From positions 62,001 to 126,000 of the forward strand of contig NW_026867486.1 of assembly GCF_020745735.1 (NCBI RefSeq): DNA of 64,000 bases, given 5' to 3'. Shown here in pieces: positions 9,983-64,000 of this stretch (position 1 is its first letter; each line of letters opens with the position of its first letter). The position numbers and the translations under genes were made by a program. Source of the DNA: Hemiscyllium ocellatum. Its lineage: Eukaryota. The notes under the pieces are model-generated. The model did no database searches and had not been told where the DNA came from. It worked only from the letters and a program-made list of their open reading frames with translations.

Positions 9983-9999
9983 AGCAGGAAGCTGCTCTA

Positions 10000-16255: not shown

Positions 16256-16557
16256 AATAATAAAAAGTATAAGTTGACAAATAACAAACGATATCCATGT
16301 TAACAAGGCTTAGCTCACCACATGCTTTACTAACCATTCTCCACAGATCCTATCCCTGCAATGACTGAGGAACAGATGCTGGTGCATCATCTCCTCCACT
16401 AGTATTTACACACTAGTCTAAGGAATTGCACAAGTAACAGTGAGGGGTAAACAGCACAAGCGCCAGTAAAAGCAGATGGAAAGTGAGTGTAAAATGTGAC
16501 TATGACAGGACAGGCCCCACATTCCTTCCCCTCCGTCCCCCCCACAACCTGCCTCAC

Positions 16558-16809
16558 CTTTCACCTCCCGGGCCCAGTACCTTCCAGGTGGCCCCATAGT
16601 TGACACAGGGGCCGCCCCACGACCAGTAGAACTCCACCACCCAGGCGGCCGACCAGTTCCCAACAGGTCCTTAACCCCATCCGCCTCCAGAATGGTCACC
16701 GGCTCCTGCCTGCTGTACAGCCGGCCGGTGTGGGCCGTGACACAGCAGCTGCGCCAGGAAGGCGGCGGTGACCAGTGACGGGGGTCTGCCCCGGGCCGCA
16801 CGGCGCCAT
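16558..16809 (-). pseudogene. QSOX-family sulfhydryl oxidase exon 1, disabled (copy 1)
   Basis: Signal-peptide-like [56 protein letters not shown], then donor AAG|GTGAGG. Frameshifted. Confidence 0.85.
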
Positions 16810-18412
16810 TTTCCTAACGGCCGCCGCTTCCCCGCTCGAGCGACTTCTCCTCCCAACCGCCTTCACCCCCGCGTGACGTCTGCACGGGGGATGGGCGGGG
16901 CCGGGGGAGCCTCACCGTCACCAAGCAACAGCCACCTCGCGCTACAACTGCTCATTCACAAAAACAAACTCTCCTGTCTCGCTCTGCAGCTGCAGGGGGG
17001 ACACTGCCACGTTTCGAGGAGCCCTGTCTACATTGGGAAAGCTCACGGCTCCATTTAAACAGATATTCCGACATCGAATACAACGATGTTAACTTTCAAC
17101 TGCGTTCAGGGAACATGTATTTTGCTCTGAGTAAGTCTATTGAGTTTAACTGCAGCATGGCTGTAGTTTTAAACTTGTTTGCTTTCCTGAACAGCTAGGT
17201 TTAAATGTTTTATTCGTTAGAAGAACCAAAATTAGTGATAGTTCACATATCCACCCTGAAATGGGGTGGGTAACTGGATCGAGTGGGTAGGCGCCATACT
17301 AAGTTTAACTTTGGGGACAGCCTTTGAGCTGCATATGAACAAACTGCTTACATGTTGCACTTATCGACTGCTAAATATCGGCTCTTGTTATCTTAACACT
17401 TAGCCTTCTGATTGGACATTGCAAAGGTTCACCTCCCGCCCACACCCCGCCAGCACCCTTCCCAAGGGTCAGACCCTCCCTCTCTCCAGGCACACAGTCT
17501 GAATAATTGACGAAGCAAAATTCACTGTCAAATCCCATCAACATGGAAGATCCCAGCCCACCCTACCTCCCACTCTGTACCCAACCCATCCAAAAACCAC
17601 AAAACATCATCTCATCTTTAAAAAACAAAAGAAAAACTGGACCGCATCAAAACGTTCAACAACGGTCAACGCTATGACTGTTACACAACACTTTACGGAG
17701 CTACATTTCAACTCGAGTTCGTTTGCAACCCCTCATGAGAGTTCACATTAAAAGCTCATTGTACCAAATCAACGGCATGCCACAGCTCTCTGGAATTCAG
17801 CGGAATTCTTCCTGGTATCCCTCATGTTTTCTGGTGTTTTTGAGAAAGGAGACCCTCCCGTTAGCTTCGCCTTCAGATCTCCTTGGCTACGCCCAAAGTT
17901 TCGGCTGATCAGTTCAAGCACAGGGTCGCAGCCTTTTCTTGCTAAGCTCAGCTGGCTTAAACGTTAGCAACGCCTCTGGTTCCCGTTGGGATTTACGCTC
18001 CCGAGCGCAGACCTGGCCCGCAGCCTGTAGTCCCACAGTTCCTGCTGACTGCAAACTGCCCTTCTGTCAGCAAAAATACAAACACGACGGGGACAGTGTT
18101 CATTTCGCTATTCTCAATGTCAACTCTGACCCCACGAAAGGGTCTCTTTTCAGGGGCGGGCATGTCAATTGCCTACTTGGGGTTTGGTGAAATGTCTCAA
18201 CAAGTGTTTCCGTTTGTCTATATTTACAAGAATTCTAACCCCAACTAGACATTTACATGTAAAATCTAAGAATTATGCAACGTGACACATGAAAGCATGA
18301 TGAGGAGCATCTCCTGTGTCCTCTCTCAGCTCAGAGAAGACTTAAACCCCGCTCCCCCCTGTAACATTCCTCCAGGTGACAAAAGGAACTTAACGCAGGC
18401 GGATTACAAGGG

Positions 18413-18590
18413 GTTGCTCAGTGGGCACAGCGCCAAGGGACCCGGGTTCAATTCCAGCCTCAGGGGCGACTGTCCGTATGGAGTTTGCACATTTCCAGCC
18501 TGCGCCTGCGAGGGTTTTCTCCGGGTGCTCCGCTTCCTCCCACAATCCAAAGATGCGGAGGAGAGGGTGGATTGGCTATGCTAAATTAGC
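18413..18590 (+). mobile_element. HE1-like tRNA-derived SINE head (copies at ~43910-44090 and ~61148-61330)
   Basis: A-box-like gctcagtgg and B-box ggttcaattcc, followed by tggagtttgcac. Confidence 0.8.
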
Positions 18591-18650
18591 CATAGTACCT
18601 AGGGATGTGTACGTGAGGGTGGATTGGCCATGCTAAATTACCCATAGTAC

Positions 18651-19018
18651 TGTTAGGACGGAATTTGTCCTTGCATGTTCGTTTTAGGAGGAGAGACAAC
18701 AGACGCTCAATTGTTTGGCACAAGCAGACTTTATTGCAGAATCGTAGCTGATACAGTGAATCACCCTGCATTCACTGGAGAAGGCACGTTCTGCCTTCCC
18801 CTCCCAAATCTGCTCCTGATATACTCTTTGCTAAGCAGAGCTTCGCGGAGCTACTAAGCATTGCCTTATTAGGACATTTCGCGTTTGCTAGGCGTTGGCA
18901 GCTGAGCTGGTCACGTAAGCAACAGTTTCGATTTCCCAAGCAGCAGCTACAGCTACAGTTTCGATTCCCCAAACAGCAGCTATAGCTCCACCCTCCCTTG
19001 ACCTATTTTATCCTAACA
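18651..19018 (-). mobile_element. Solo LTR (copy 1)
   Basis: TGTTAGGA...TCCTAACA termini, 4-bp TSD GTAC, internal TATA-like sequence and AATAAA on the minus strand. Confidence 0.85.
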
Positions 19019-19450
19019 GTACCCAGGGATATGTAGGATTGGGTAATTGAGCATGGCCAATCTACCCTAACCTACACATCCCTGGGTACTATGGGTAATT
19101 TAGCATGGCCAATCTACCCTAACCTACACATCCCTGGACACTATGGGTAATTTAGCATGGCCAATCCATCCTTAGTGTAGGATTGGCCAGGCTAAATTGT
19201 CCTATAGTATCCAGGGATGTGCAGGTTTGGGTGGATTGGTCAGGCTAAATTACCCATAGTGTCCAGGGTTGTGTAGGTGAGGGTGGATTGGCCATGCTAA
19301 ATTGTCCTATAGTATCCAGGGATGTGCAGGTTTGGGTGGACTGGCCGTGCTAAATTACATAGTGTTTGGGGATGTGCAGGTTAGGGGGCATTGGCCATGC
19401 TAAATTACCCATAGTGCCCAGGGATGTGTAGGCTAGGTGGGTTAGCCAAT
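19019..19450. repeat. ~50-bp minisatellite derived from the HE1 SINE body, with an internal orientation switch
   Basis: Repeated gggatgtgtaggttagggtggattggccatgctaaattacccatagt units and their reverse complement. Confidence 0.85.
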
Positions 19451-20309
19451 GGGAATTGCAGGGTTACAGGCAGAGGTCTGGGTGAGGTGTGGGTTGGATG
19501 GGCTGAAGGGCCTATTCCTACACTGCAGGGGTTCTAAGCGTGAGATGAGGTGCTTGACGGAAACGATGGGGAAGAGGCAGTGAAAACACAACGAGACCGT
19601 TTGAAAGTGGGAGCATGACAGGAGGGGGTGGGTAAATGGGATGTGGTGAGGGAGGGGGCTTAGGAGAGAAAGAGACACAGAAAGAGAGGGTCACACACAG
19701 ATGCAACTGGTGAAAGAGGGGAAGATTGTGATAGGTTCAGATAAGGTGGAGGAAGAAAAGCTGTTCCCTATTCACTGATAGTGACAAGGTCAGGGGCGGC
19801 CTGAAGTTCAGGGGTTTGAGCAGGAGAGGGGGGAAAACAGAGGAAAAACAGGTTTACCCAGCAAGCAGCAATATGCTGGAATCCGCTGTCACCTCAGAGA
19901 GACAGACAGAGCAGAGGCAGATGCAGAGAGAGAGACACAGAGAGAGACAGAGACGGGGAGGTAATCAGATGAATGGCCTCCCTGTGCTGTGAGATCCAAA
20001 AGGAGCACGCGAGCAGCTGCCCCAGTGTTTCTGGCGGTCTGAGGCATCTCCCCTCGCTCCATTACTGGTACCGCTCTCCCGTCCCGTTGGCACCCTCCCG
20101 GTGAACGGCCCACTCTCCCAATGCACTCAAGCTGCCCGTTCCCCTCCCGGGGGCTGGAAGAGGACGGAACAGCCCGTTCCGGAGCGGGGCTCGGGAACGC
20201 TGCCCATGTCCGCGACGTCCTTTCCGAGAAAGGAAACAAAGACAACAGACAGGGGACCACCCGCATCAACGGGAATGACAACATTTCACCCTCAGACAAG
20301 GCTTTGTCA

Positions 20310-20790
20310 AGAGATGTACAGCACGGAAACAGACCCTTCGGTCTAACCCGTCCATACCGACCAAATATCCCAACCCAAATAGTCCACCTGCCAGCACCGG
20401 CCCATATCCCTCCAAACCCTTCCTATTCATATACCCATCCAAATGCCTCTTAAATGTTGCAATTGTACCAGCCTCCACCACATCCTCTGGCAGCTCATTC
20501 CATACACACACCACCTTCTGCATGAAAAGTTGCCCTGTAGGTCTCTTTTATATCTTCCCCTCTCACCCTAAACCTATGCCCTCTAGTTCTGGATTCCCCA
20601 ACCCCAGGGAAAAGACTTTGCCTATTTATCCTATCCATGCCCCTCAATTTTGTAAACCTCTATAAGGTCATCCCTCAGCCTCCGACGCTCCAGGGAAAAC
20701 AGCCCCAGCCTGTTCAGCCTCTCCCTGTAGCTCAGATCCTCCAACCCTGTCAACATACTTGTAATCTTTTCTGAACCCTTCCAAGTTTCG
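20310..20790 (-). mobile_element. CR1 3' fragment (copies at ~41750-42235 plus and ~62855-63345 minus)
   Basis: VWNELPEDVVEAGTIATFKRHLDGYM. Confidence 0.9.
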
Positions 20791-21212
20791 CAACAGCGGG
20801 GAGACCCAGAAATGGAAAAGACTGAAGGGGGAAGTCAGCGGTAAATCTTTTGAAGAGGTTACAAAGGAGAGACCTCTGTCTGCAGCGGGAATGACCCCAC
20901 AGTAGCAGGTCGAGGTGGACGGCATTTAAGGAGAAGCTGGATACAGACGTCAGGGAGAAAGGAACTGAAGGGAATGCTGCTGTAAGGGAAATCAAGTGTG
21001 AGCAGTGAAGAGGGGAGGTGCGTAGAGGCTCACATGGGTCAGAAATACTGAGAGAGACCAGTTGAGCTGAAGGACCTGACTGGAGACTCAATGGGACAGA
21101 GAGTGAAATTTGGATCACCTGCAAGAGAAGGAGAAACACGTGATTTACCTTCCAGGATTAAGCAAGTCCCGCAGATTCTGCAGATCACTTTTTTGGTCAG
21201 AGCACTGAGTAT

Positions 21213-21225
21213 NNNNNNNNNNNNN
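21213..21225. other. Assembly gap (13 N)
   Basis: Run of n. The paralogous copies contain ~130-150 bp at this point (63767-63897; ~41178-41328). Confidence 0.99.
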
Positions 21226-21497
21226 GCCCAACCAGTCCACACTGACCCTCTGAAGAGTAACCCACCCAGACCCATTTCCCTCTGACTAATGTAACTAACA
21301 CCACGGGCAATTTAGCATGGCCAATTCACCCTGACCTGCACATCTTTGGACTGTGGGACGGAACCGGAGCACGAGGAGGAAACCCACGCAGACGCGGGGA
21401 GAATGTGCAAACTCCACACAGTCTGTCGCTGAGGCAGGAATGAAACCCGGGTCCCTGGTACTGTGAGGTAGCAGCGCTAACCACTGAGCCACCGTGC
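21226..21497 (-). mobile_element. HE1 SINE
   Basis: Reverse complement of gcacggtggctcagtggttagc ... tggagtttgcacattctccc. Confidence 0.9.
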
Positions 21498-22238
21498 TGG
21501 TTCATCTAATTCTGGATAATTGAAGTTCCTCTGTATTATGTGCACTTCTGGTCTATCGGAAGGATGTTCCCCCGTGTGGACCCGCTGGTGGATCTGGAGG
21601 CCGGATGAGTGGGGAAGCCCTTGCCACAGATGGAGCAGGTGAAGGCACCCTCGCCGTGTGCACCTGCTGGTGCCGCAGCAGGCTGGACGAGTGAGAGAAG
21701 CCCTTGCCGCAGACGGAGCAGATGAAGGACCGCTCCGCGGTGTGGACCTGCTGGTGCCGCAGCAGGCTTGACGAGTGAGAGAAGCTCTTGCCACAGACGG
21801 AGCAGCTGAACGGCCTCTCCCCGGTTGGACCCGCTGGTGGGTCAGCAGGTGCGACGAGCGGGTGAAGCCCTTGCCGCAGACGGTGCAGGTGAAGGCCGCT
21901 CCCCGGTGTGGACCTGCTGGTGCTTGAGCAGGCTGGACGAGTGAGGAAGCCCTTGCTGCACACCAAGCAGGTGAAGGGCCGCCCCCGGTATGGACCCGCT
22001 GGTGCTTGAGCAGGCTGGACGATTCGCTGAAGTCCTTCCCGCACTCAAGACAAGCGAACGCCGCTCCCCGGTGTGGACCCGCTGGTGGGACAGCAGGTGG
22101 GGCGACTGGGTGAAGCCCTTGCCGCAGACGGAGCAGGTGAAGGGCCGCTCCCCGGTGTGGACACGGTGGTGGATCTCCAGCATGGAGGGATAGCGGAATC
22201 CTTTCCCGCAATCCCCACACTTCCACGGTTTCTCTCAT
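21477..22238 (-). pseudogene. C2H2 zinc-finger gene, 8 fingers, multiply frameshifted (arm A counterpart of 39905-40924)
   Basis: CxxC...HxxxH-TGERPF repeats spread over three reading frames. Acceptor at 22488-22489. The frameshifts may be sequencing errors near the contig end. Confidence 0.85.
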
Positions 22239-22621
22239 GGCGCGCGGAATGCCTCCTGAGACTTCCTTTCCCCACAGTGGGCAAACTGGCTCAGGCACGT
22301 GCCCCTGTGGTTCAGGTAAAGATGATACTTTAAGAGCCTACTGAAGCAGACAAAAACGTTCAAAGAATTTTCCCCTTCTGGACTGAAAGAGGGACGTCTC
22401 TCCTGTCCCACGAATCAAGGGGCTCTGTCAGACCTTCACATGGTACTCATTGGGGAGCTCTACCTGCAAAGCTGCTCTTCTCATATCCTGTGAAAAGGGA
22501 TTACAAAAGTCATTGCTGCCTGCACATGACAGGAATTCAGAACAGATCATTCTAGTTTCTGTAGAACTTCCCAAAACAACCAAGTTACAATATGCAGATG
22601 CCAGTGTTGGGCTGGGGTGTA

Positions 22622-23044
22622 CAAAGGTAAAAAAAATCACACATCACCAGGTTGTAGTCCATTAGATTTGTTTAGAAGTTCGAGCTTTCAGAGCTCTGCA
22701 CCTTCATCAGGTAGCTAGTAAAACCTCCAGGCGAAAAAGACAGCAGATGCTGGAGATCAGTGTGGTGCTGGAAAAGCACCGCAGGTCAGGCAGCATCCGA
22801 GGAGCAGGGAAAAAATAAAAAAAAATCGACATTTCGGGCAAAAGCCCTTCATCAGGAATGAGGAAAGAATGAGGACACTTTCCTCATTCCTGAAGACGGG
22901 CTCATGCCCGAAACCTCGATTCTCCTGTTCCTTGGATGCTGCCTGACCTGCTGAGCTTTTCCAGCAACACATTTCCAGCTCTGATCTCCAGCATCTGCAG
23001 ACCTCATTTTCTCCTATAACCTAGAGTTGTGATTTTTAACTTTA
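22622..23044. mobile_element. Nested fold-back of Penelope terminal repeats with hammerhead motifs (mirror copy ~39100-39520)
   Basis: Inner ~130-bp inverted arms 22741-23010 centred on aggaaagaatgaggacactttcct. Outer inverted ends at ~22622-22660 and ~23016-23044 belong to a second family. Confidence 0.85.
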
Positions 23045-23274
23045 AAAAGTGTTGCAAATCTCCACCCCACACACACACAGACACACACACTTTTCTTCAA
23101 TTCTCACTCTGCTGTTTCTGATATTACCCATCCCCCAGTATTGTCCAGAAAGGGACTTATTACCTAAAAAAGCTGTAAAACTCCATCCCACACACTCTTT
23201 AACTCTTGCTGTACCTAATATTCCACCTCCCTCCCCATGCTCCAGCAGGGTCTGACTGATGCTCATTGACTGAG

Positions 23275-23700
23275 CCACACTCACCTCTTCCTGGACACAG
23301 GGACCCTCCAGACCAACACAACATCAGCTCCCCATAACCCCCCCGCAACGGCGCATGTGCAGGAGCATCCGGTCACGTGAATCGAGGGACCGCCGTCGTC
23401 ACAAAGACCGCGCGTTCATTGGACGAAGTGCCCGTCCGTGCGGCGGCGCTGGTCTTTGTGACGCCCACGTGACCTCTCTCCTCCACCAACCCCCACGCGC
23501 CCGTCCCTTCACCTCGACACGGGGAGGCATGACCAATGGGGAGCTTTGGAGGACCGGAAGGAAGGAAGGCTGGTCCTCCTACCAATCAGAGCATCCCCTC
23601 ATTGTCTGAATGCGGAAGTTGTAGCATGAGCTCCTGCTGCTCTCTCTCTCTCTGAATGAAGATTGAGTGTTACCCCAGACTGCACCAACCTCTGTGAGTA
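23275..23700. promoter_or_regulatory. Putative bidirectional CpG promoter with divergent first exons (arm A)
   Basis: Two GTCACGTG E-boxes, CCAAT boxes, NRF1-like and ETS (GCGGAAGT) sites. Donors at ~23280-23285 (minus) and ~23694 (plus). Confidence 0.7.
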
Positions 23701-23919
23701 CAGCACCCTCTCTTCTCACCCCTCCTATTCCATTTCTTTTCTCATTTTGGGATTAAACTGTTGGTTTGTAGGAAGTGAAGTGAAAGGAGGTGAACTCAGG
23801 AAAGGTGCATATGCTGGATGCATTGGTCTAGATCGCTGTCTCTGTCCCTCTGTGTCTGTTTGTCTTTGCTCCTCTGTGTCTGTGTCTCTCTCTCTCTGTC
23901 TCTGTCTCTGTCTCTCTCG

Positions 23920-24590
23920 TGTCCTTCATCAGGAATTGCGGAGGGGGAGGGGTGGAAAGGGTGCGGAGAGATAAATAGGAAGGTGGGAGTGGGGCTGGGG
24001 GTAAGGTAGATGCAGGTTGGGTGGGTGGTGATGGCAACAGGGTGGAGCAGATTGGTGGGAAGGAAGATGGACAGGTGGGACAGTTCAAGAGGGTGGTGCT
24101 GAGTTGGAGGGTTGGAGCTGGGGTGGGAGGGGGAGGGAATGTGAGGAAACTGGTGATATCGATGTTGATGCCATGTGGTTTCAGGGTCCTAGGCCACCTG
24201 ATACCTGGAGGAAGAATGCCTCTGCATTGGGACCCTCCAACCATACAGGATCAATATTGATTTCACCAGTTTCCTCATTCCTCCCGGCCCCTGCCCAATC
24301 CCAGATACAACCCTCGAACTTGGGACTGCTCTTTTGAACTATCCCACCTGTCCATCTGCCTTCCCATCTATCTGCTCCACCCTCCTCTCTGACCTGTCAC
24401 CTTCTTCCCCCGCTTTCATCTACCCATAGCATTCTCAGCTCCCTTCCCCAGTCCCACCTCCCTCCCATTTATCTCTCAGTCCCTTTGGGCCCACCCCACA
24501 TTCCTAATCAAGGGGTTATGCCAAAAACATCAAACCTCCTGCTCCTCAGATGCTGGCTGACCTGCTGTACTCTTGCAGCACCAGACATTT
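23920..24590. mobile_element. Two inverted Penelope 3' fragments (mirror ~37520-38210)
   Basis: Similar to the 3' region of the Penelope elements at 1-200 and 30797-31150. Confidence 0.75.
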
Positions 24591-25044
24591 TGGTGCTTAT
24601 TTGTCTGGATGTTCTGATGTGACCCATTCGCAGATGTGAAGTCACATTCGAGAAAAACTCCTCCATGGAATGTGGGCTTTCTTTTTGGCAAGGCCAACAA
24701 TGTTTTTGTCACTAACTGCCCTTCAGACAAGAGGATTGCCAGACTTTAGGGGGCATTTTAAAAGTCAAGCACGTGAGCCGTCATATGCAGGCAGCACCAA
24801 GTTAACGCTGACGGATTTCCTTCCCTGAAGAGCGTTATTGAATCAAATGGGTTTTCAGAAAAGTTTCATTCTCTCAATGACTGAGACTAGTTTTCAATTC
24901 AGATTTTTAAAAAAATTTAAATTTAATTTCCCCAATGTTTGTTTTTACTGGTATTTGAACCCATGAGCCCAGATTATTTGCCTGGTGCCTCTGGATTGCT
25001 GGTCCAGTGTTGTTGTAACATCACTGACTCGCCTGGACAGCATT

Positions 25045-25510
25045 GAGAGTCATACAGATGTATAGTACACAAAGAGACCCTATGTGCAACTGGTGCATGC
25101 CGAGCACATAGCCAAAATTGATCTAGTCCGATGTGCCAGCACGTCCCTCCAAACCCTTCCCATTCATATTCCCATCCAGATGCCTTTTAAATGTTGCAAT
25201 TGTCCCAGCCTCCACCACTTCCTCTGGCAGCTCATTCCATACACGCACCACCCTCTGACTGACAAAGTTGCCCCTTAGGTCCTTTTTATGTCTTTTCCCC
25301 TCTCACCTCTAGTTCTGGACTCTCCCGCCCCAGGGAAAAGACCTTGTCTATTCACCCTATCCATGCCCCTCATCATTTTATAAACCTCAATAAGGTCACC
25401 CCTCAGCCTCCGATGCTCGAGGGAAAACAGCCCCAGCTTATTTAGCCACTCCCTATAGCTCAAACCCTGGCAACATCTTTGTAAACATTTTCTGAACCCT
25501 TTCAAGTTTC
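25045..25510 (-). mobile_element. CR1 3' fragment (mirror ~36600-37070)
   Basis: LGLFSLEHRRLRGDLIEVYK. Confidence 0.9.
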
Positions 25511-25649
25511 GTTTAACTGCACAGTAAAATCATACTGGACTTGGATATATCTCGTGTTACTCTGCAATATGTATTTATTTATGGTTGTATAAATTTGATT
25601 TATAATTTATTTCTAGTTATATCATAGAGTGTTGTAGCCATGTTATGTG

Positions 25650-26201
25650 TTCAAAGTTTGGGAGAAGATAGTAGTGTTATGGATGCGGATCATTAGCTGT
25701 TTTCCTGTTTGTCCTATGTAGTGTTTTGTGCAGTCCTTATTGTGTACAAAATCCCATGCAAGGACTGCACAAAACACTACATAGGACAAACAGGAAGACA
25801 GCTAACGATCCGCATCCATGAATACCAACTAGCCACGAAACGACACGACCAGCTATCCTTGGTAGCCATACACGCAGATGACAAATCAACATGAATTCGA
25901 CTGGGACAACACTAGTATTATAGGACAAGCCAAACCGAGAACAGCCAGGGAATTCCTAGAGGCATGGCACTCATCCACAGATTCAATCAATAAGCACATC
26001 GACCAGACCCAATATACCGACCACTGCAGCGGACAGCTGGAACTGACAACCGGAAGTGGGCAGAGACAAACCACTATAAATGCCGGAGGAAAGATCACAG
26101 AAGCGCTTCACAGGAGGCTCCCAAGCACTGAGGATGTCACCTAGACAGGGGACGAAACGTCTGCAATACAAACTCCCAGTTCGGCGAACAGAACCACAAC
26201 A
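25650..26201 (+). mobile_element. Second Penelope family: GIY-YIG 3' end with inverted 5' piece
   Basis: VYKIPCKDCTKHYIGQTGRQLTIRIHE and AREFLEAWHS..SINKH. Confidence 0.9.
26125..26164 (+). ncRNA. Minimal type I hammerhead ribozyme motif
   Basis: gca CTGAGGA t gtcacct agac aggggac GAAA c GTC tgc: complete catalytic core, stem I gca/tgc, stem II, palindromic ACGT stem III. Confidence 0.75.
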
Positions 26202-26526
26202 TGTCATGTATTTCCAGTCATACCCGTTACAGGACAGGAGAATACTGGGCTCAATGCTGACTCTGTAGATGAATCTAGTCAGACTCATTCCTCTCTATAT
26301 CCAGAGAGTCCTGTAAGTGTATTCCGCTATAGGGTCCCTCCAGTCTCACTTGGGTATTGAGTGACTCCACTACAGTCATCCTCAGAGCGAGCATGTTCTA
26401 GGTCTTGTTACCAAAGCAAAGTTCTTGCTCTGATTCTCTTTCTCCACCCCCCCCACATCTTGGTCTGTCAATATGGTAGAAAGAGAGGCGGGGGGGGCAG
26501 ATAACTAGGTTAGCAAACTGCATGAG

Positions 26527-26850
26527 GGTGGCATGGTGGCTCAGTAGGTAGCACCGATGCCTCATAGTGCCAGGGACCTGGGTTCAATTCCAGCCTCGGG
26601 CGACTCTCCGTGTGGGTTTCCCCCGAGTGCGCCGGTTTCCTCCCACAGTCCAACCTTGTGCAGGTGAGGGTGGGTTGGCCATGCTAAATTGCCCAGAGTG
26701 TTCAGGGATGTGTAGCTTAGGTGCACGTGTCAGGGGTAAATATAGGGGAATGGGTCTGGGTGGGATACTCATCACAGGGTCGGTCTGGACTTGTTGGGTC
26801 GGTATGGACTTGTTGGGCCAAAGGGCCTGTTTCCACACTGTAGGGGTTCT
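26527..26850 (+). mobile_element. HE1 SINE (mirror ~34985-35290)
   Basis: ggtggcatggtggctcagt..ggttcaattcc head and gggcctgtttccacactgtagg tail. Confidence 0.9.
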
Positions 26851-27058
26851 AATTCACTTTTCTTGGAGCTAGATCTGCCAAATGTCAGGAATCAGAAAAA
26901 TTGGGAGGGAGCGTATTAGGTACGGCAGTAGGGAGAGTGTGGGGGATGGAGACTCACAGATTTTGGGTTATGGGCGTGGAATGAATATTCCGTGAAATCG
27001 ATCTGTTAAACTCTGAGATTCTACGTGATACTGACAGCGATGACTTTCTAATTGACAG

Positions 27059-27675
27059 GCTTTCACAGGAGGATTTACCTGCATATCTTGAACTAATTGC
27101 CTCAGCCAGCTTGACTCATTGGGACTGGAATTTTATCGATCTTTTGAGTGGAGAAGGAGGATTGTCCCGCCTGCTTCCAGAGATCTGACTGGTAAAGCAC
27201 TGAGATGCCGCTGTTCGAGGGTGGAGGGAGCTTTACCGGAGCGGAGAGTTAGCCAGCCGGCCCCCCGCAGCAGAGTGGGACGTCAGAGGGAGCGTCGAAC
27301 CTGGAGGGAGCCCGCGCCGTGGGGAAACCGTGGAAGTGTGGGGAATGCGGGAAGGGGTTTCGAGTCCCCTCTGAGCTGGAGATCCACCGGCGCGGTCACA
27401 CCGGGGACAGGCCGTTCTCCTGCCCCGAGTCCGGCAAGGCCTTCATTGGGTCCTCCAAGCTGCTGAGGCACCGGCGGGTCCACACCGGGGACAGGCCGTA
27501 CCCCTGCCCCGAGTGTGGCAAGGCCCTTCACCCAGCTGTCCCACCTGCAGACGCACCGGCGCCTCCACACACCAGGGAGAGGCCTCTCACCTGCCCCGGG
27601 GGCGGCAAGGCCTTCAATCGATCGCCGACCCTGCGGACGCACAGGCGCCTTCCCAACGTGATCGCACGGAGTTGA
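27059..27675 (+). pseudogene. C2H2 zinc-finger exon, 4 degenerate fingers
   Basis: Acceptor gatgactttctaattgacag at ~27057. [13 protein letters not shown]... with the ATG changed to GTG, Cys lost in two fingers, and a frameshift. Confidence 0.85.
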
Positions 27676-28244
27676 AGTCTGCAGCGAATCCCACCCAGGA
27701 CTGGGGGGGATCGTGCCCCGTGGGGGGATTGTGCCCCGTTCGAAGACAGTGGGTGAAGCGGGAAGGGAGCGAGGCTTCCTTTCTGCCAGACTGGCCGCTC
27801 TCGCTCCCTTTGCTTCCCGTGGGACCGATGCTGTTTGAGGCTGGGACTGCACGTTCCCCGGGCCAAAGATCTGCAGGAGCTGAGGAAGTGCACTCCTTTC
27901 ACACCGGATGGTAAATCATGTTTGTCCCATCTATTTCAGTCTTAAATACCCTCCGTGACCTGGCCTCCCAGCCTCCTGTGGCAGTGAATTCCACAGATTC
28001 CCCACTCTCTGTCTGAAGAGGTTTCTCCTTATCTCCGTTCTAAAAGGGCTAAGGCTGTGCCCTCGGCTCCTGGTCTCTCCTACCAATGGAAACATCTTCC
28101 CAATGGCCACAGATAGATCAAAGTCAAATACAATAGCCTCTATTCCATTGAGTGTCCAGCACATTTTATAACACTTTGTAAAATCAGGAGGGCCATTGAT
28201 GAGGTGAGTGGCAGGTGTCTTTTCCCGATAGAATAAAGAATATT

Positions 28245-34141: not shown

Positions 34142-34771
<630 letters not shown>

Positions 34772-38856: not shown

Positions 38857-39039
38857 TGGCTCAGTCAATGAGCATCAGTCTGACCCTGCTGGAGCATGGG
38901 TGAAGGTGGGATATTAGGTACAGCAAGAGTTAAAGAGTGTGTGGGATGGAGATTTACAGCTTTTTTAGGTAATAAGTCCCTTTCTGGACAATACTGGGGG
39001 ATGGGTAATATCAGACACAGCAGAGTGAGAATTGAAGAA

Positions 39040-39070
<31 letters not shown>

Positions 39071-53106: not shown

Positions 53107-53801
53107 TCAATCCCCCTGCAATGCCACCTGATCCCGCTGGTAGGTCAGCAAGGAGGTGGCCTGGGTAAAGGCCTTCCCGCACTCGGGGCAACTTAAGGGC
53201 CTCTCCCCCATGTGGATCAACTGGTGGATCCGAAAGTTGGAGGAATCGCTGAAGCCCTTCCCGCAGTCAGGGCAGGGGAACGGCCTCTCCCCAGTGTGAC
53301 TGCGCCAATGAGTCTCCAGGGCAGACGGGAAACAAGCCTTTCCCACAGTCGCCACACTTCCATGGTTTCTCCACGGGGCGGGATTCCTCGGGTTTCTCCA
53401 CGGCCGAAGCTTCAGCCGCACACAAACGCATGTGGAGCTTCTCTCCACCATGAATTCCTCTTTCCAAACCGTATAGCTGTTACACGCTCCTCACTCAGTG
53501 CATTACAACTGTAGGGTCTCTCATCCAGTCCCACTGACGCTGAAAACGTACCCAAATAGGAACCAAACAGCTTTGCTCCTCACAGAATCATAGTTGCAAA
53601 CTGTTGCGGTCCCGATGGATTGGATTGAATGACTGTCAGACATGGATGTCAAAGTAAGGACTGCAGATGCTGGAGTGTCAGAATCAGTAAGTGCAGTGCT
53701 GGAAAAGCACAGCAGGTCAGGCAGCATCCGAGGAGCAGGAGAGTCGACGTTTTGGGCATAAGGCCTTCATCTGTTGATTTTGAAACTTCCATCCTCAGAT
53801 C
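53107..53801 (-). pseudogene. C2H2 zinc-finger exon, 3 fingers, frameshifted
   Basis: [13 protein letters not shown] / [27 protein letters not shown]... Acceptor gacagtgatgacttttgtaatc..ttcag at 53802-53803, matching the other ZNF acceptors. Short Penelope insert at ~53650-53770. Confidence 0.85.
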
Positions 53802-54324
53802 CTGAAATGTAAAAAGAGATTACAAAAGTCATCACTGTCAGTGCAGAGTAGAAATTCTGAACAAGGAATTCTGCGGAATATTTTCTTTTGTTATTCCACA
53901 AAATTGAAAGCACCATCCCACTCTTTCTCCCCCTGTCTTCTCACTCTGATCTAACTAATTCCCCTGAAGATGCTGATTCAGGATCTTCCAGGGGCAGAAA
54001 GGCAAAAATGTCAAGACTGACATCTCTCTGAATTTTGGATAACTCCACCTGAAAGTTAATATCTTTCACAACATTGGGATACTGCTGAGAGGTGAGGAAG
54101 TCTGATTTTTGGAAGCCATAAAAAAATAATGAGTTTGTGCCAATCCCTTCCCTTCAGAGAATCCCCAGAGCGGTGAAAGCAGGCCACTCAGCCCCACAAA
54201 TCCACCTCTGAAGGGTAACAGATCCACACCTATTCCCCTACCTCTATTGCTCTACATTTACCCGCTGATTAATGCACCTAACCTGCACATCTTTGGGCAC
54301 GGTCAATACATCCTCACCTGGACA

Positions 54325-54810
54325 AGTGAAAAGTCACACCACCAGTTGAGTATTCAACAGGTTTATTTGGAAGCACTCGCTTTCAGAGCGCTGATCCTTC
54401 AGGTGGTTGTGGAGAATAAGATCATAAGACACAATTTATAGAAAAACATTATAGTGTCCTGCCACCAAAATGATATATTGAACAAACCTGGATTGTCAAG
54501 TCTTTCATCTTTTAGACTGGGTTGCAGCTATCATTCACATGTAAATCCCAGACCTTCTTGCAAGGCGCCATTTCAAGATAACTCGAGGTTTTATAGCAAA
54601 ATGTGACATCTCAGTTCACACAATGCATTAAAGGTGTGAGGTCAGAGTCTGTCTGTGTCCCAGTCTTGAGTCAGACTGGTTCTACTTCCAAAGTGGAATT
54701 TACAAAATATTACATGGATTGACTGCTTACAGATTGTGTATTTTTTGAGCAAAATAGAATGTGTCTGCAAATATCATTCTGCAAATACAAATTTAACCCC
54801 ATGGACTTGT
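54325..54810 (-). mobile_element. Penelope-type terminal repeat, third family (related to ~49080-49235 and 22622-22720)
   Basis: caacaggtttatttggaagcact.gctttc.gagcgctg motif with a degenerate hammerhead. Confidence 0.6.
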
Positions 54811-55049
54811 TATGTGCGTCTGTGCATGAGAGAGAGAAAAAGTCAATGTCCATGCTGTATAGCTCTATGCCAATTTGATAACAGATGCTTTAGTCCTGTT
54901 GATGTAAATGTTGTTGTATGGTGTCCCATTTGAATTCCTCAAATAGGACACCATACCAATCCTTGGGAGAGCCCTATTTTGGGTGGGGAGGGGGAGGGGG
55001 GGATCAAAGCTTCAACAGAAATCCAGCAGAGCTGAGAACAGACCAACAT

Positions 55050-56760
55050 CCACATGCCTTTTAAATGTTGTAATTGTGCCAGTCTCCACCACTTCCTCTG
55101 GCAGTTCGTGCCACACATGCACCACCCTCTGTGTGAAAAGGTTGCCCCTCAGACCCCTGTTAAATCATTCTGCTCTCACCTCAAACATACGCCTTCTAGT
55201 TTTCTTGGACTCCCCTACCCTGGGGAAAAGACCTTAGGTTTCCCCCCCTATCCATGCCCATTACAAAGGTCTATAAATTTACCCCTCAGCCTCTGATGCT
55301 CCATGGAAAATGTCCCTGGCCTATTCAGCCTCTCCCTATAGCTCAAATCTTTTCTGACCCCTTTCAAAGTTTCATAACATCTTTCCTACAGCAGGGATAC
55401 CAGAACTGAACGCAGTATTCCAAAATTGGCTTAACCAACATCCTGGACAGCCACAACATAACCTCCCAACTCATCTACTCGATGCTCTGACCAATAAAGG
55501 CCATCCTACCAAATGCCTCATTCACTATCCTGTCTACCTGAGACTCCACTTTCAAGGAACTATGGAACCTGCACTCCAAGGTCTCTTTGTTCTGCAACAC
55601 TCCCCTTAACTGTGTCAGTCCTGCCTGGATTGCTTGACCAAAATGCAACAACTCACATTTCTCAAAATTTAATTCCATCTACCACACTTTGGCCCATCCG
55701 ATCAATTCTAATTTATAGCTAACTCACTTTTCTCTTTTATTCTCTAGAAGCTGAAAATCTCCATCCCACACACTCTCCCTCCAGTCTCAGTTTACTGAAC
55801 CTAATCCCTGCTGTACCTCATCCTGAAGGGTCTGGTTCATGCTGATTAATAGGCCCACACTCGGGAGGGGGCGGGGGTGGGTCTAAATGAAACCTACATA
55901 ATCCTGAACAGCCCAGAGTGGACGTTGTGAAGATGTTTCCATTGGTAGGACAGACTCAGACCAGACGGCACAGACTTAGAGTAAAGGGAAGTCCTTTTAG
56001 AAAGGAGAAACTTCTTCAGCCAGAGAGCGGTGAATCTGTGGAATCTATTTCCATAGAAGGCTGTGGAGGTCAGGTCACTGGGGATATTTAAAACTGAGAC
56101 AGGTTCTTGAGTATCAAGGGGATCGAGGGTTACGGGGAGAATGGGGTTGAGAAACCTAGCAGCCACGATTGAATGGGGTGATTAGACCTGATGGACTGAA
56201 TGGCCTAATTTCTGCTCCTCTGACTTTGGGCCTCTTGCTGTCCTGGACACAGAGCAAGAGAGTTGGGAGCAAGACTAGGCCATTCGGTCTTTCGAGTCAG
56301 CACCAGCATTGAACAATTCATAACTGAATATGAATATACCTACAGCTAGGTGAATAGGCTGGGACTTTTTTCACTGGAACACATGAGGTTGAGAGGTGAC
56401 TTTAAAAGTGGTTCATAAAATCATGAGGAGGGTAGATGAGGTGAACCGCAGGTGTCCTTTCCCTAGGATGGGGGTTTCAAGATTAGGGAGCAAATGAAGA
56501 AGGTGAGTGGGGAAAGATTTTCAAAAGACTGGAATAGTGCCTTTTTTGATTCCACACACAAACTACTCTCAATGTCCAGACACGGTGGTGGATGTAGGTA
56601 CAGTAACAAGGTTTAAAAGACATTTGGATAAGTACGTGAATAGGAAAGGTTCAGAGGGATATGGGCCAAATACACACAGGTGGGACTAGTTTAGTTTGTG
56701 AACACAGTCAGCACGGTCTAGTTGGACTGAAGGGTCTGTTTCTGTGTTGTCTGACTCTGG
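55050..56760. mobile_element. CR1 fragments in both orientations
   Basis: CR1 RT and 3'-end motifs. Paralogous to 13400-14560. Confidence 0.78.
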
Positions 56761-59179
56761 AACTGTTCTAAACTGGTCTTAAAACCATTTTCTTGCCTTC
56801 CTCCATAAACATCCACTTCTTTCTTTCAAAAATCAGATTAACTCAGCCTTAAATTTATTCAAATGACCCCCTAACTGCAGCATGACATCCCCATTTCTGA
56901 ACTCAATTCCTCTTGCTAACACACCACTTGCCTTGCTCATTGCCTGCTGCACCTGTCTGACAACTGGCACAGAAGGACGCTGATGCCCCTCTCAACATCC
57001 ACGCATCATTCCTGATGAAGGGCTTGTGCCCGAAACTTCGACTGTCCTACTGCTAGGATGCACCTTGAATGAATCTACCATCCCTACCTCTGCTGGCAAT
57101 GAGTTCCAGGCACCTATCACCCTGAGTAATGTACTTTCTGTGTGCATCTCCAACATGATGTCCCAACTCCTGAACTCAGCATGTGAACAATGAAGGCAAG
57201 TGTGCTGAACACCTTCTTCACCCCTGTCTACCAGTGATGTAACTTTCAAGAACAATGAACCTGAACACCTCCAGGTCTCTGTTCTCCAACATGACCCAGG
57301 GCCCTACCATTACCTGTTCAAGTCTTGCCCTCCTTTATTTTAGCAAAATGCAACCCCTCACTTATATCCATACCCCTTTCATACACACACGCTCTCGCTC
57401 AGACACACACACACCACCCCCTCAAAACTCTCACCCTCTCACAGACTCATACTCCATCACAATCACACTTTATCAAGCAGGCACACATGCAAATACACAC
57501 TCACAGCGCACAGTCTTATACACAAACTCACACACACTTCCCTGAAAGGAGTTTCCCTGAAACGTCAATTTTCCTGCTCCTCAGATGCTGCCTGACTTGG
57601 TGCAGCAACACACGCTCGATCCTAAACTTATTACCCTCTAGTTCTGGACTGCCCCATCCAAAGGAAAATACCACGTCTATTTACCATATCCATGCCCCTC
57701 ATGATGATATACAAGTGTATAAGGTCACTCCTCAGACTCTGGCAAGCTACGGAAAACAGTCCCAACCTGAACTTCTGTCTCTCCTCACCCGGGTAACCAA
57801 GACACATACCTGCTGTCCCAAAGTCTGCTCCCTCTCTGGATTCACTCCAGTTGCTACAAGTGAGCTTGCTCCGTTATTCATTAAAATCATGGCTGAGCTA
57901 TCCATCGTCTCAGCTTCTCCTCCCTGCACTGTCACAAGGAACCCCTTTATTCCCCAACCAGACCAAATCCCACCCAACTGTGTCTTGAATATACTTAATG
58001 AAGCTGCCTCTATTGCTTCCTTGGCCAAAAGATTGCCGAGATTTTGATGAAGGGCTTTTGCCCGAAACGTCGATTTTCCTGCTGTCCAGATGCTGCCTGA
58101 CCTGCTGTGCTTTTTAAGCACCACTCTAATCTAGACTATTCCATAGATTCACGACCCTCTGGGAAAAGCAGTTCCTCCTCATCTCTGTCTAAAAGCTACT
58201 CCCTCTAACCTTGACGCCTTGTCTCACCCACCAGAAATTACTGGACAGGTTAGGGCTTCATCCCCACAGTGCAATGACATTGGGAAGATGTTTCCATTGG
58301 TAGGAGAGACTAGTACTAGAGGTCACAGCTTTAAGAATAAAGGGAAGACCTTTAGGAACAGAGATAAGCAATGTCTCCTTTTCTGCCGACAGCGAGGAGC
58401 ATGGACAATGTACTGGTGACACCAGCGAGCAGGTGCGCTGTTGTCACACCGAGGAGCAGGCACAATGTGCTCTGTGGCGATGCTGGTGTTATTGACAGAT
58501 GTTAAATGTTCAAATGCCAAGAGGAGAAATAAAGGGTAGAGCCACAGTTCTTTTTCCCCATGTGGCTCAACATTTTATAGCTTTTGTCTGGCTGCTCAAC
58601 TTTTTTTTTTAAATGTCTTTTCCCCAGAATAGGGGTGAGGTTCACAACTACAGGGCATAGGTTTAGGGTGAGACCAGAAAGATATTAAAAGGTACCCATG
58701 GGGCAACTTTTCCATGCAGAGGATTGTGAACGTATGGAATGAGCTGCGAGAGGAAGTAATGGAGGCTGTATTTAACAGGCATCTGGATGGGTATATGACT
58801 AGGAAGGGTTAAGAGGGATATGAACCAAGTGCTGACAAATAGGACTAGATTAATTTAGGATATCTGGTTGGCATGGGCAGGTAGGCCAAATGGGTGTGTT
58901 CACGTGCTGTACATCTTTATGACTCTATATAATAAAAAAGTATATTTTTCCAAATACCAAACTATCTCCATGTTAACAAGGCTTAGTTCACCACATACTT
59001 TACTAACCATTCTCAACAGGTCCTACCCCTTGAATGACTAAGAACATACAATGCTGGTGCATAATCTTCTTCACTAGTATTTACACACTACCCTCAACAA
59101 TTGCACAAGTAACAGCAAAGGGTAAACAGCACAAGGATTAAAAAACACAGTGAGGGGTAAACAGCACAAGGACTAAAAC

Positions 59180-62100
59180 AGTGAGGGGTAAACAGCACTA
59201 GGGCCAGTAAAAGCAGATGGAAAGTCAGTGTAAAATGTGACTATGACAGGACAGGCCCCACATTCCTTCCCCCCGTCCCCCCACAACCTGCCTCACCTTT
59301 CACCTCCCGGGCCCAGTACCTTCCAGGTGGCCCCATAGTTGACACAGGGGCCGCCCCACGACCAGTAGAACTCCACCACCCAGGCGGCCGACCAGTTCCC
59401 AAGCAGGTCCTTAACCCCATCCGCCTCCAGAATGGTCACCGGCTCCTGCCTGCTGTACAGCCGGCCGGTGTGGCCGTGACACAGCAGCTGCGCCAGGAAG
59501 GCGGCGGTGACCAGTGACGGGGGTCTGCCCCGGGCCGCACGGCGCCATTTTCCTAACGGCCGCCGCTTCCCCGCTCGAGCGACTTCTCCTCCCAACCGCC
59601 TTCGCCCCCGCGTGACGTCTGCACGGGGGGATGGGCGGGGCCGGGGGAGCCTCACCGTCACCAAGCAACAGCCACCTCGCGCTACAACTGTTCATTCACA
59701 AAAACAAACTCTCCTGTCTCGCTCTGCAGCTGCAGGGGGGACACTGCCACGTTTCGAGGAGCCCTGTCTACATTGGGAAAGCTCACGGCTCCATTTAAAC
59801 AGATATTCCCACATCTAATACAACGATGTTAACTTTCAACTGCGTTCAGGGAACATGTATTTTGCTCTAAGTCTATTGAGTTTAACTGCAGCATGGCTGT
59901 AGTTTTAAACTTGTTTGCTTTCCTGAACAGCTAGGTTTAAATGTTTTATTCATTAGAAGAACCAAAATTAGTGATAGTTCACATATCCACCCTGAAATGG
60001 GGTGGGTAACTGGATTGAGTGGGTAGGCGCCCTGCTAAGTTTAACTTTGGGGACAGCCTTTGAGCTGCATATGAACAAACTGCTTACATGTTGCACTTAT
60101 CGACTGCTAAATATCGGCTCTTGTTATCTTAACACTTAGCCTTCTGATTGGACATTGCAAAGGTTCACCTCCCGCCCACACCCCGCCAGCACCCTTCCCA
60201 AGGGTCAGACCCTCCCTCTCTCCAGGCACACAGTCTGAATAATTGACGAAGCAAAATTCACTGTCAAATCCCATCAACATGGAAGATCCCAGCCCACCCT
60301 ACCTCCCACTCTGTACCCAACCCATCCAAAAACCACAAAACATCATCTCATCTTTAAAATACAAAAGAAAAACTGGACCGCATCAAAACGTTCAACAACG
60401 GTCAACGCTATGACTGTTACACACTTTACGGAGCTACATTTCAACTTGAGTTCGTTTGCACTCCCTCATGAGAGTTCACATTAAAAGCTCATTGTACCAA
60501 ATCAACAGCATGCCACAGCTCTCTGGAATTCAGCGGAATTCTTCCTGGTATCCCTCATGTTTTCTGGTTTTTTTGAGAAAGGAGACCCTCCCGTGAGCTT
60601 CGCCTTCAGATCTCCTTGGCTACGCCCAAAGTTTCGGCTGATCAGTTCAAGCACAGGGTCGCAGCCTTTTCTTGCTAAGCTCAGCTGGCGTAAACGTTAG
60701 CAACGCCTCTGGTTCCCGTTGGGATTTACGCTCCCGAGCGCAGACCTGGCCCGCAGCCTGTAGTCCCACAGTGCCTGCTGACTGCAAACTGCCCTTCTGT
60801 CAGCAAAAATACAAACACGACGGGGACAGTGTTCATTTCGCTATTCTCAATGTCAACTCTGACCCCACGAAAGGTTCTCTTTTCAGGGGCGGGCATGTCA
60901 ATTGCCTACTTGGGGGTTGGTGAAATGTCTCAACAAGTCTTTCGGTTTGTCTATATTTACAAGAATTCGAACCCCAACTAGACATTTACATGTAAAATCT
61001 AAGAATTATACAACGTGACACATGAAAGCATGATGAGGAGCATCTCCTGTGTCCTCTCTCAGCTCAGAGAAGACTTAAACCCCGCTCCCCCCTGTAACAT
61101 TCATCCAGGTGACAAAAGGATCTTAACGCAGGCGGATTATAAGGGGTTGCTCAGTGGTCACAGCGCCAAGGGACCCGGGTTCAATTCCAGCCTCAGGGGC
61201 GACTGTCCCTATGGAGTTTGCACGTTTCCAGCCTGCGTCTGCGAGGGTTTTCTCCGGGTGCACCGGCTTCCTCCCACAATCCAAAGATGCGTAGGTGAGG
61301 GTGGATTGGCTATGCTAAATTACCCATAGTGCTCAGATATGTGTAGGTTAGGGTGGATTGGTCAGGCTAAATTACCCATAGTACCTAGGGATGTGTACGT
61401 GAGGGTGGATTGGCTATGCTAAATTACCCATAGTACTGTAAGGCCGGAATCTGTCCTTGCATGTTAGTTTTAGGAGGAGAGACAACAGACGCTCAATTGT
61501 TTGGCACAAGCAGGCTTTATTGCAGAATCGTAGTTGATACAGTGAATCACCATGCATTCACTGGAGAAGGCACGTTCTGCCTTCCCCTCCCAAATCTGCT
61601 CCTGATATACTCTTTGCTAAGCAGAGCTTCGCGGAGCTACTAAGCATTGTCTTATTAGGACATTTCGCGTTTGCGAGGCGTTTCCTGTTATTGAGCTCAT
61701 TTGGGCGTTGGCAGCTGAGCTGGCCACGTAAGCAACAGTTTCGATTCCCCAAACAGCAGCTATAGCTCCACCCTCCCTTGACTTATTTTATCCTAACAGT
61801 ACCCAGGGATGTGTAGGATTGGGTAATTTAGCATGGCCAATCGACCCTAACCTACACATCCCTGGGTACTATGGGTAATTTAGCATGGCCAATCCACCCT
61901 TAGTGTAGGATTGGCCAGGCTAAATTGTCCTATAGTATCCAGGGATGTGCAGGTTTGGGTGGACTGGCCGTGCTAAATTACCCATAGTGCCCAGGGATGT
62001 GTAGGCTAGGTGGGTTAGCCAATGGGAATTGCAGGGTTACAGGCAGAGGTCTGGGTGAGGGAGGGTTGGATGGGCTGAAGGGCCTGCTCCTACACTGCAT

Positions 62101-64000
62101 GGGTTCTAAGCGTGAGATGAGGTGCTTGACGGAAACGATGGGGAAGAGGCAGTGAAAACACAACGAGACCGTTTGAAAGTGGGAGCATGACAGGAGGGGG
62201 TGGGTAAATGGGATGTGGTGAGGGAGGGGGCTTAGGAGAGAAAGAGACACAGAAAGAGAGGGTCACACACAGATACAACTGGTGAAAGTGGGGAAGATTG
62301 TGATAGGTTCAGATAAGGTGGAGGAAGAAAAGCTGTTCCCTATTCACTGATAGTGACAAGGTCAGGGGCGGCCTGAAGTTCAGGGGTTTGAGCAGGAGAG
62401 AGGGGGAAAACAGAGGAAAAACAGGTTTACCCAGCAAGCAGCAATATGCTGGAATCCGCTGTCACCTCAGAGAGACAGACAGACGCAGAGGCAGAGAGGT
62501 AATCAGATGAATGGCCTCCCTGTGCTGTGAGATCCAAAAGGAGCACGCGAGCAGCTGCCCCAGTGTTTCTGGCGGTCTGAGGCATCTCCCCCTCACCCCA
62601 TTACCGGTACCGCTCTCCCGTCCCATTGGCACCCTCCCGGTGAACGGCCCACTCTCCCACTGCACTCAAGCTGCCCCTTCCCCCCACCCCGGGGCCTGGA
62701 AGAGGACGGAACAGCCCGTTCCGGAGCGGGGCTCGGGAACGCTGTCCATGTCCGCGACGTCCTTTCCGAGAAAGGAAACAAAAAGGACGACAGACAGGGG
62801 ACCACCCGCGTCAACGGGAATGACAACATTTCACCCTCAGACAAGGCTTTGTCAAGAGACGTACAGCATGGATACAGACCCTTCGGTCTAACCCGTCCAT
62901 ACCGACCAAATATCCCAACCCAAACTAGTCCCACCTGCCAGCACCCGGCCCATATCCCTCCAAACCCTTCCTATTCATATACCCATCCAAATGCCTCTTA
63001 AATGTTGCAATTGTACCAGCCTCCACCACATCCTCTGGCAGCTCATTCCGTACACACACCACCTTCTGTATGAAAAAGTTGCCCTGTAGGTCTCTTTTAT
63101 ATCTTCCCCTCTCACCCTAAACCTATGCCCTCTAGTTCTGGATTCCCCAACCCCAGGGAAAAGACTTTGCCTATTTATCCTATCCATGCCCCTCATAATT
63201 TTGTAAACCTCTATAAGGTCATCCCTCAGCCTCCGACGCTCCAGGGGAAACAGCCCCAGCCTGTTCAGCCTCTCCCTGTAGCTCAGATCCTCCAACCCTG
63301 GCAACATCCTTGTCAATCTTTTCTGAACCCTTCCAAGTTTCGCAACAGCGGGGAGACCCAGAAATGGAAAAGACTGAAGGGGGAAGTCAGCGGTAAATCT
63401 TTTGAAGAGGTTACAAAGGAGAGACCTCTGTCTGCAGCGGGAGTGACCCCCACAGTAGCAGGTCGAGGTGGACGGCATTTAAGGAGAAGCTGGTTACAGA
63501 CGTCAGGGAGAAAGGAACTGAAGGGAATGCTGCTGTAAGGGAAATCAAGTGTGAGCAAGTGAAGGGGAGGTGCGTAGAGGCTCACATGGGTCAGAAATAC
63601 TGAGAGAGACCAGTTGAGCTGAAGGACCTGACTGGAGACTCAATGGGACAGAGAGTGAAATCTTGGATCCACCTGCAACAGAAGGAGAAACACGTGATTT
63701 ACCTTCCAGGATTAAGCAAGTCCCGCAGATTCTGCAGATCACTTTATTGGTCACAGCACTGAGTATAGGGGTTGGGGTCTGGACAGGACGTTGGTTAGGC
63801 CACTTTTGGAATACACAGGAACCTCGATTATCCAAAGGACACATGCAGGGTGTATTTCAGTCGCTTGACGATTAGATCCCTTCCAGTGTGGAAACAGGCC
63901 CAACCAGTCCACACTGACCCTCCGAAGAGTAACCCACCCAGACCCATTTCCCTCTGACTAATGTAACTAACACTACAGGCAATTTAGCATGGCCAATTCA
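59180..64000 (+). repeat. Third duplication copy (same orientation as arm A), running off the window end
   Basis: Direct match to 16440-21330. Includes the solo LTR (61437-61798), minisatellite, CR1 and HE1 tail. Confidence 0.95.
59297..59548 (-). pseudogene. QSOX-family exon 1, disabled (copy 3)
   Basis: Same 252-nt exon, donor at 59295-59296, WGGPC in place of WCGHC. Confidence 0.87.

Follow-up and report, generated by a model that had tools for sequence, protein, structure and literature searches.

In a 64,000-nucleotide stretch of the genome of the shark Hemiscyllium ocellatum (contig NW_026867486.1, positions 62,001 to 126,000 of the forward strand; hereafter the window), a zinc-finger (ZNF) block is present in three copies, A, A' and C, which alternate in orientation. 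Judged by its sequence, this part of an elasmobranch ZNF cluster carries a genuine segmental duplication built up in layers. The forward-reverse-forward units are probably old, and their cores seem to have been overwritten by one another much later, through homology-guided copying. The one feature that stands out is a sharp step in identity, common to the three copies and located at a minisatellite.

Self-BLAST and global alignment reproduced, almost to the base, the arm coordinates given in the original prediction, as well as the inverted orientation of the arms around a spacer of about 4 kb (Table 1). The third copy that had been proposed from 59180, inverted relative to A', was also found by self-BLAST: C is direct to A and inverted to A', which gives the forward-reverse-forward order, and A' and C form a second inverted pair. 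The arm matches had bit scores of 3,000-8,000, far above chance. As in other segmental duplications, the arms are copies of at least 1 kb with at least 90% identity and do not correspond to a single transposable element; A and A', inverted around a non-duplicated spacer, make up a palindromic one. The alternating triplet is real and, as had been argued, not a simple read fold-back. Inverted duplications of three different ages are found at this locus.

At the outer boundary of the core, identity drops from 98-99% to about 80% within about 30 bp in all three copies. The step coincides with a 31-bp tandem repeat whose copy number is 1, 2 or 3 depending on the unit. Past this boundary, the three copies stay homologous and collinear for 2.1-3.0 kb, with A 13410-16434 matching C 55356-59179 and A 14316-16434 matching A' 48502-46065. 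These flank stretches (F) are 67-84% identical and are broken by copy-specific insertions. The Kimura two-parameter (K2P) distance is 0.18-0.25 in the flank (15689-16430) and 0.022-0.025 in the core for all three pairs, a step of about tenfold. F is a mosaic of several different interspersed repeats, which occur in the same order in all units, and the three flank copies of a long interspersed nuclear element (LINE) tail group together in a single clade (support 98/95), apart from seven other members of the family in the window. The LINE-tail clade, the same-order mosaic and the collinearity together indicate that the flanks are old duplicates rather than independent insertions. Furthermore, the step in divergence between flank and core points to an early origin of the forward-reverse-forward units (K about 0.2) and to cores that were made alike about tenfold more recently. 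The outer boundary of all three copies has the appearance of the edge of a gene-conversion domain, i.e. a high-identity tract inside collinear, low-identity paralogous sequence. The earlier proposal that the cluster expands by inverted duplication does not account for the 2% divergence of the cores, as the flanks are collinear, 18-25% diverged and united by the LINE-tail clade.

Alignment of A with A' revealed 331 mismatches at 12,148 aligned positions (2.7%; 97.3% identity) and 67 indel events amounting to 1,239 bp, in agreement with the previous estimate of 95-98% identity with many substitutions and indels. When indel-near sites and the ZNF array were left out, 219 differences remained in about 11.8 kb (1.85%; about 98.1% identity). 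BLAST identity of the arms was 89-96% when indels were counted, and hinted at a gradient of identity toward the spacer; this was mostly an effect of indel counting, substitution identity being 96-99% throughout. In the 4.4 kb common to A, A' and C, pairwise divergence was 1.9-2.4% and the copies were nearly equidistant, with 41 lineage-specific changes in A, 45 in A' and 61 in C, as in a nearly star-like history. Between A and A', sites in a CpG context were 10.5% diverged, as compared with 1.42% at other sites, a 7-fold excess. This excess indicates that the differences are due to real, methylation-driven germline mutation and not to sequencing error. Taken together with the private, strongly diverged flanks and the private junctions, it argues for three real loci. 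The large indels between the arms are changes of unit number in the 84-bp finger repeat or in a 52-bp satellite, or are related to transposons. Purifying selection was rejected as the cause of the high identity, since repeat debris makes up most of the core and the CpG sites in it have diverged so far. The cores appear to have drifted apart neutrally to about 2% since becoming alike, and we regard the neutral mutation spectrum as established, along with the structure, the two tiers of divergence and the common boundary.

The finger arrays have followed a course of their own. Only A' appears to have clearly kept an intact 11-finger gene, C being cut off before its expected array. The fingers of A' have an exact 84-bp period (28-residue spacing) and, as is typical of Cys2-His2 (C2H2) genes, are tandem C-x2-C-x12-H-x3-H fingers connected by TGE(K/R)P linkers; the frame starts with an ATG in a good start context and stops inside a repeat resembling a short interspersed nuclear element (SINE). 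In the array of A, a 1-bp insertion is found right after the ATG and nearly every finger unit is short of one base. As the consensus of A may be weak (see below), calling its ZNF a pseudogene is provisional. Fingers 1, 2 and 11 alone have clear counterparts in A and A' (92-96%), whereas interior fingers of A match those of A' no better than paralogous fingers inside one array match each other. The lack of clear counterparts for the interior fingers indicates that the arrays were remodeled after the arms had become alike. Each arm also contains a small degenerate ZNF fragment, which resembles, in inverted orientation and with about 80% similarity, the 5' end of the large array; the fragment of A holds 131 bp (about 1.5 finger units) with no counterpart in A'. 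No KRAB (PF01352) or other effector domain was found by Pfam in the A' reading frame. Shark ZNF homologues, used as tblastn queries against the window, matched no credible exon upstream, although a distant, unannotated one may exist, and an exact look-up of the A' product returned no public record. The best named protein matches of the ZNF, and of the Penelope-like element in the spacer, are from sharks and rays, which agrees with an elasmobranch host.

The inner boundary does not resemble the outer one. Identity falls from 98% to random at 28952/33016, inside a LINE that continues in A but of which A' has only the 3' 577 bp, joined to unique sequence. Instead of the homologous transition expected at both ends of a gene-conversion tract, there is an abrupt junction to unrelated sequence at this end. 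The spacer contains the rest of the LINE, the Penelope-like element and about 0.7 kb of unique sequence. No inverted self-match pointing to internal symmetry of the spacer was present among the BLAST matches listed. Fold-back inverted duplications are characterized by little or no spacer and by microhomology or a short inverted repeat where they turn; the palindrome, with its spacer of 4 kb, does not conform to this.

These observations can be arranged into the following history. A repeat unit of at least 15 kb, made of the 2-3 kb flank F and the 12.5-kb core, would have been copied long ago into forward, reverse, forward order. Much later, at about one-tenth of the flank divergence, the cores of the three units would have been made alike through interlocus gene conversion or break-induced copying among the units. 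One end of the copied tract would lie at the 31-bp minisatellite, with the old divergence surviving beyond it, while the inner end in A', with its non-homologous junction in the LINE, would mark either the place where copying stopped or a central deletion that came afterwards. The finger arrays would then have been reshuffled by unequal exchange between finger units. We infer gene conversion as the process, as well as its direction and timing. In human segmental duplications, conversion tracts have a mean length of 6.26 kb and whole-gene events average 26 kb (PMC10172114), which places the length of the core tract within the documented range.

Several points weigh against this history. Plain conversion does not produce non-homologous junctions such as the inner one, so that one has to assume either repair of mixed outcome or a subsequent deletion in the centre. 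In humans, copies that have diverged by more than 10% rarely undergo conversion (PMC10172114), which makes a single late overwrite of 20%-diverged cores mechanistically awkward. A deletion followed by duplicative transposition mimics the signal of conversion (PMC10172114). Among 102 polarized changes, a small and old sample, 37 were AT-to-GC and 42 GC-to-AT, with no GC bias apparent. Finally, part of A may be a weak or mixed consensus: single-base deletions number 23 in A versus 6 in A', many of those in A being outside homopolymers, and A has the fewest unique substitutions, both in the core and in the old flank. As an alternative to a weak or mixed consensus, these features of A may mean that it acted as the repeated donor. 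The rarity of conversion between diverged copies, and its possible mimicry, would favor repeated homogenization of the cores over a single late event. It is conceivable, though doubtful, that the locus is an autosomal ZNF repeat of alternating orientation evolving in concert, in which a minisatellite-bounded domain of 12.5 kb is repeatedly homogenized among three old units while the finger arrays escape and diversify.

We considered the possibility that the locus results from a plain recent inverted duplication with a third copy, two new 12.5-kb copies having arisen about 2% ago and the likeness of the flanks reflecting incidental transposon content. The three cores are indeed young and nearly equidistant, the inner junction of A' is the clean non-homologous breakpoint in a LINE that a duplication would give, and inverted duplication is seen at other scales in the locus too. 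Yet, such an event leaves unexplained why each copy is joined seamlessly, at the same base, to 2-3 kb of collinear sequence that is 18-25% diverged, and why the LINE-tail copies of the flanks are each other's closest relatives. We therefore regard it as unlikely. The shared outer boundary might also mean that the core is a large mobile element, inserted at a specific site of a repeated target represented by the flank, as the boundary is sharp and identical in three copies and is followed by older, target-like homology. However, neither direct nor inverted repeats are present at the termini of the core, and Pfam scans of the open reading frames (ORFs) in the arms found no transposase, integrase or helicase domain. 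The core is instead a patchwork of a host ZNF gene (the large exon and the small fragment lying head-to-head with it), CpG-rich islands, SINE and LINE debris and the 52-bp satellite, and no matching continuation of the target is found at the other, inner end. This explanation is hardly credible.

Another possibility was that the arms are kept alike by ongoing gene conversion, as in mammalian sex-chromosome palindromes. In support of this, the A/A' divergence at non-CpG sites varies from one part of the arms to another (0.1-2.9% per kb; P = 5e-5), and the outermost kilobase contains 5 A/A' differences where 18 were expected (P = 3e-4), C being normally diverged there. A ratio test for this first kilobase was, however, not significant (P = 0.15), so that we see in it a weak hint of later, limited exchange between A and A'. 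The longest mismatch-free tract between the arms is 379 bp, within the range of chance, as uniform placement of the differences gives a mean maximum of 319 bp and a 95% limit of 446 bp. A mosaic signal in the raw runs test on three-way informative sites (P = 0.0014) turned out to be an alignment-edge artefact, since it disappeared (P = 0.64) when sites near indels were removed and clustered changes collapsed. Identity is about 98% rather than the more than 99.9% of sex-chromosome palindromes, no GC bias is apparent, and the two ZNF arrays have neither the same number of fingers nor the same content. The identity, the tract length near chance and the loss of the mosaic signal on filtering leave no sign of ongoing homogenization, which we consider improbable. 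Of the suggestion that the arms may exchange sequence as sex-chromosome palindromes do, the historical part is thus supported by the tenfold identity step; of ongoing exchange, the 379-bp tract and the runs test give no sign. Still less probable is an assembly artefact, in which haplotypes or collapsed paralogues were laid out as inverted and direct repeats. It would fit the peculiarities of arm A, which contains the sole gap, has the excess of one-base deletions mentioned above, with nearly one 1-bp loss per finger unit, and shows the fewest unique substitutions. But there are three copies, not two, with private diverged flanks and junctions; the 7-fold CpG excess is typical of germline mutation; and an asymmetric 4-kb spacer is present in place of a hairpin. 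A divergence of 2%, accompanied by changes in finger number, is moreover far above the heterozygosity that would be expected for a shark, which counts against an artefact.

Table 1. Features of the triplicated ZNF block and its surroundings (positions in the window).
Feature	Position	Strand	Evidence or remark
Old flank F, unit A	13410-16434	+	Collinear blocks with C flank and, from 14316 inward, with A' flank; about 67-84% identity
Arm A, high-identity core, 12.5 kb	16435-28952 (start 16435/16440)	+	Self-BLAST, global alignment
Assembly gap, 13 N	21213-21225	.	Sole N run in window; inside arm A, non-coding
ZNF array, arm A	21477-22298	-	About 8 finger units of 82-84 bp, frame-broken as assembled
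Small degenerate ZNF fragment, arm A	27337-27650	+	Head-to-head with large array, about 5 kb away
LINE across arm/spacer boundary in A	28376-30100	-	Reverse-transcriptase ORFs, PF00078
Spacer of A/A' palindrome, 4,063 bp	28953-33015	.	Global alignment
Penelope-like element in spacer	31041-32301	-	PF01541 GIY-YIG
Arm A', inverted high-identity core, 13.0 kb	33016-46064	-	Self-BLAST, global alignment
Small degenerate ZNF fragment, arm A', 2-3 fingers	34139-34510	-	Head-to-head with large array, about 5 kb away
Intact ZNF reading frame, arm A'	39905-40924	+	11 C2H2 fingers; PF00096 4e-73, PF13465 3e-76
Old flank F, unit A' (inverted)	46065-48502	-	Collinear blocks
Centre between facing old flanks of A' and C	48503-55355	.	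Transposon fragments and older ZNF relic
Older three-finger ZNF relic between A' and C	53107-53451	-	First finger frame-shifted
Old flank F, unit C	55356-59179	+	Collinear blocks; ends in 31-bp tandem repeat
31-bp tandem repeat at C boundary, 2.5 copies	59120-59202
Copy C, high-identity core, 4.8 kb visible	59180-64000	+	Self-BLAST; window end cuts C just before expected ZNF array

The gap in arm A interrupts otherwise collinear sequence: on its left, the match runs up to A' 41327 and C 63766 and, on its right, it picks up again at A' 41176 and C 63898, without a change of strand or order. Since the paralogues carry 150 bp (A') and 131 bp (C) at this site, the 13 N are probably an underestimate of its length. 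The gap lies 252 bp 3' of the stop of the ZNF frame of A; no coding frame crosses it, and no open frame of more than 57 codons touches it.

Other elements were observed in and around the units. The older ZNF relic between A' and C is about 65-75% similar to the ZNFs of the arms, and upstream of it there is weak collinearity with the sequence preceding the large ZNF. CpG-island-like segments (16601-17000, 45401-46000, 59201-59800, 23201-23600 and 38401-39000) have a GC content of 0.6-0.67 and a CpG observed/expected ratio of 0.7-0.8, versus 0.41 for the window. Every copy has one immediately inside its outer boundary, in the part where A and A' have diverged least, and a further one is located about 1 kb upstream of the large ZNF exon; they are possible promoters, the candidates for the A' gene being those at 38401-39000 and 45401-46000. 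Rfam and tRNA scans of the whole window found no RNA. The 52-bp tandem repeat (also read as 105-bp), at 19040-19448, 43146-43398 and 61281-61436, differs in copy number among A, A' and C and is related to the 3' part of a SINE-like element. A' contains a small palindrome of its own (35609-36425, centre near 36061), with arms of about 300-450 bp that are 93-94% identical and a GIY-YIG-like motif from Penelope-like debris; its counterpart in arm A (25908-26201) is one half only, which accounts for a 304-bp difference between the arms.

As for mobile elements, the Penelope-like copy of the spacer is 76% identical to another at 132-1349. Both have open reverse-transcriptase-like and GIY-YIG ORFs, and their best named protein match is from Chiloscyllium punctatum (78%). 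A relic resembling a retrovirus or long-terminal-repeat element lies in pieces on the minus strand at about 7833-10598, with gag-like, aspartyl-protease (weak Pfam match) and reverse-transcriptase-like ORFs; no long terminal repeats were found flanking it (about 7.8-10.6 kb). Two LINE 3'-end fragments, at 3985-4863 and 4928-5803, form a tandem pair with 80% identity and belong to a family scattered through the arms and flanks.

Mammalian sex-chromosome palindromes, such as P1-P8 of the human Y chromosome and those of the X chromosome, have arms that are more than 99.9% identical. The shark locus shares with them the inverted arms, the non-duplicated spacer, multi-copy genes in the arms and probable past arm-to-arm transfer, but its arms are about 98% identical, with no long identical tracts, no detected GC bias and one gene copy apparently broken. 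The fetal globin pair is an example of an interlocus gene conversion domain. As in such domains (PMC10172114), a high-identity tract lies here in collinear, diverged paralogous sequence, with a boundary at a simple or tandem repeat and a length in the known range; unlike in them, the boundary is common to three copies, two of the pairs are inverted and one tract end is non-homologous. The autosomal palindrome SD12A1 of mouse chromosome 12 has 93% identity and stratified layers, with no ongoing conversion (PMC13688818). The resemblance extends to the inverted arms around a unique spacer, an identity well below 99.9%, older and younger layers and no evidence of ongoing homogenization (PMC13688818). 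By this analogy, the shark locus can be regarded as a miniature of the same kind, though it is hundreds of times smaller (12.5-kb versus Mb-scale arms), carries a ZNF gene, and differs further in its third, alternating copy and in the abrupt tenfold step in identity where the copies have a common boundary. Fold-back (break-induced) inverted duplications (PMC10622511) similarly place an inverted duplicate near the original, with a non-homologous inner junction; in the shark, however, no central short inverted repeat appears among the matches listed for the 4-kb spacer, and the outer end merges into old homology with no second breakpoint. With tetrapod C2H2/KRAB clusters the locus has in common 28-residue finger arrays, conserved linkers, rapid change in finger number, and pseudogenized copies and older relics nearby. 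It differs in that no KRAB or other effector domain was found in its frame, in that the copies alternate instead of being head-to-tail, and in its elasmobranch host.

ZNF clusters are among the fastest-evolving vertebrate gene families and have been studied mostly in tetrapods. The present locus is an ordinary segmental duplication of a kind already known. It nevertheless provides a compact case from a cartilaginous fish, in which inverted duplication of three ages, a clean conversion-type boundary in three copies and the rapid remodeling of fingers within about 2% of neutral time are found together. Inverted repeats with 98% identity can also flip their spacers and are prone to mis-assembly. 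If the units do evolve in concert, the locus could be used to test directly what sets the limits of conversion domains; if not, it would be an ordinary segmental duplication. A repeat evolving in this manner would represent palindrome maintenance on a small scale and without sex linkage, in connection with the evolution of DNA-binding specificity.

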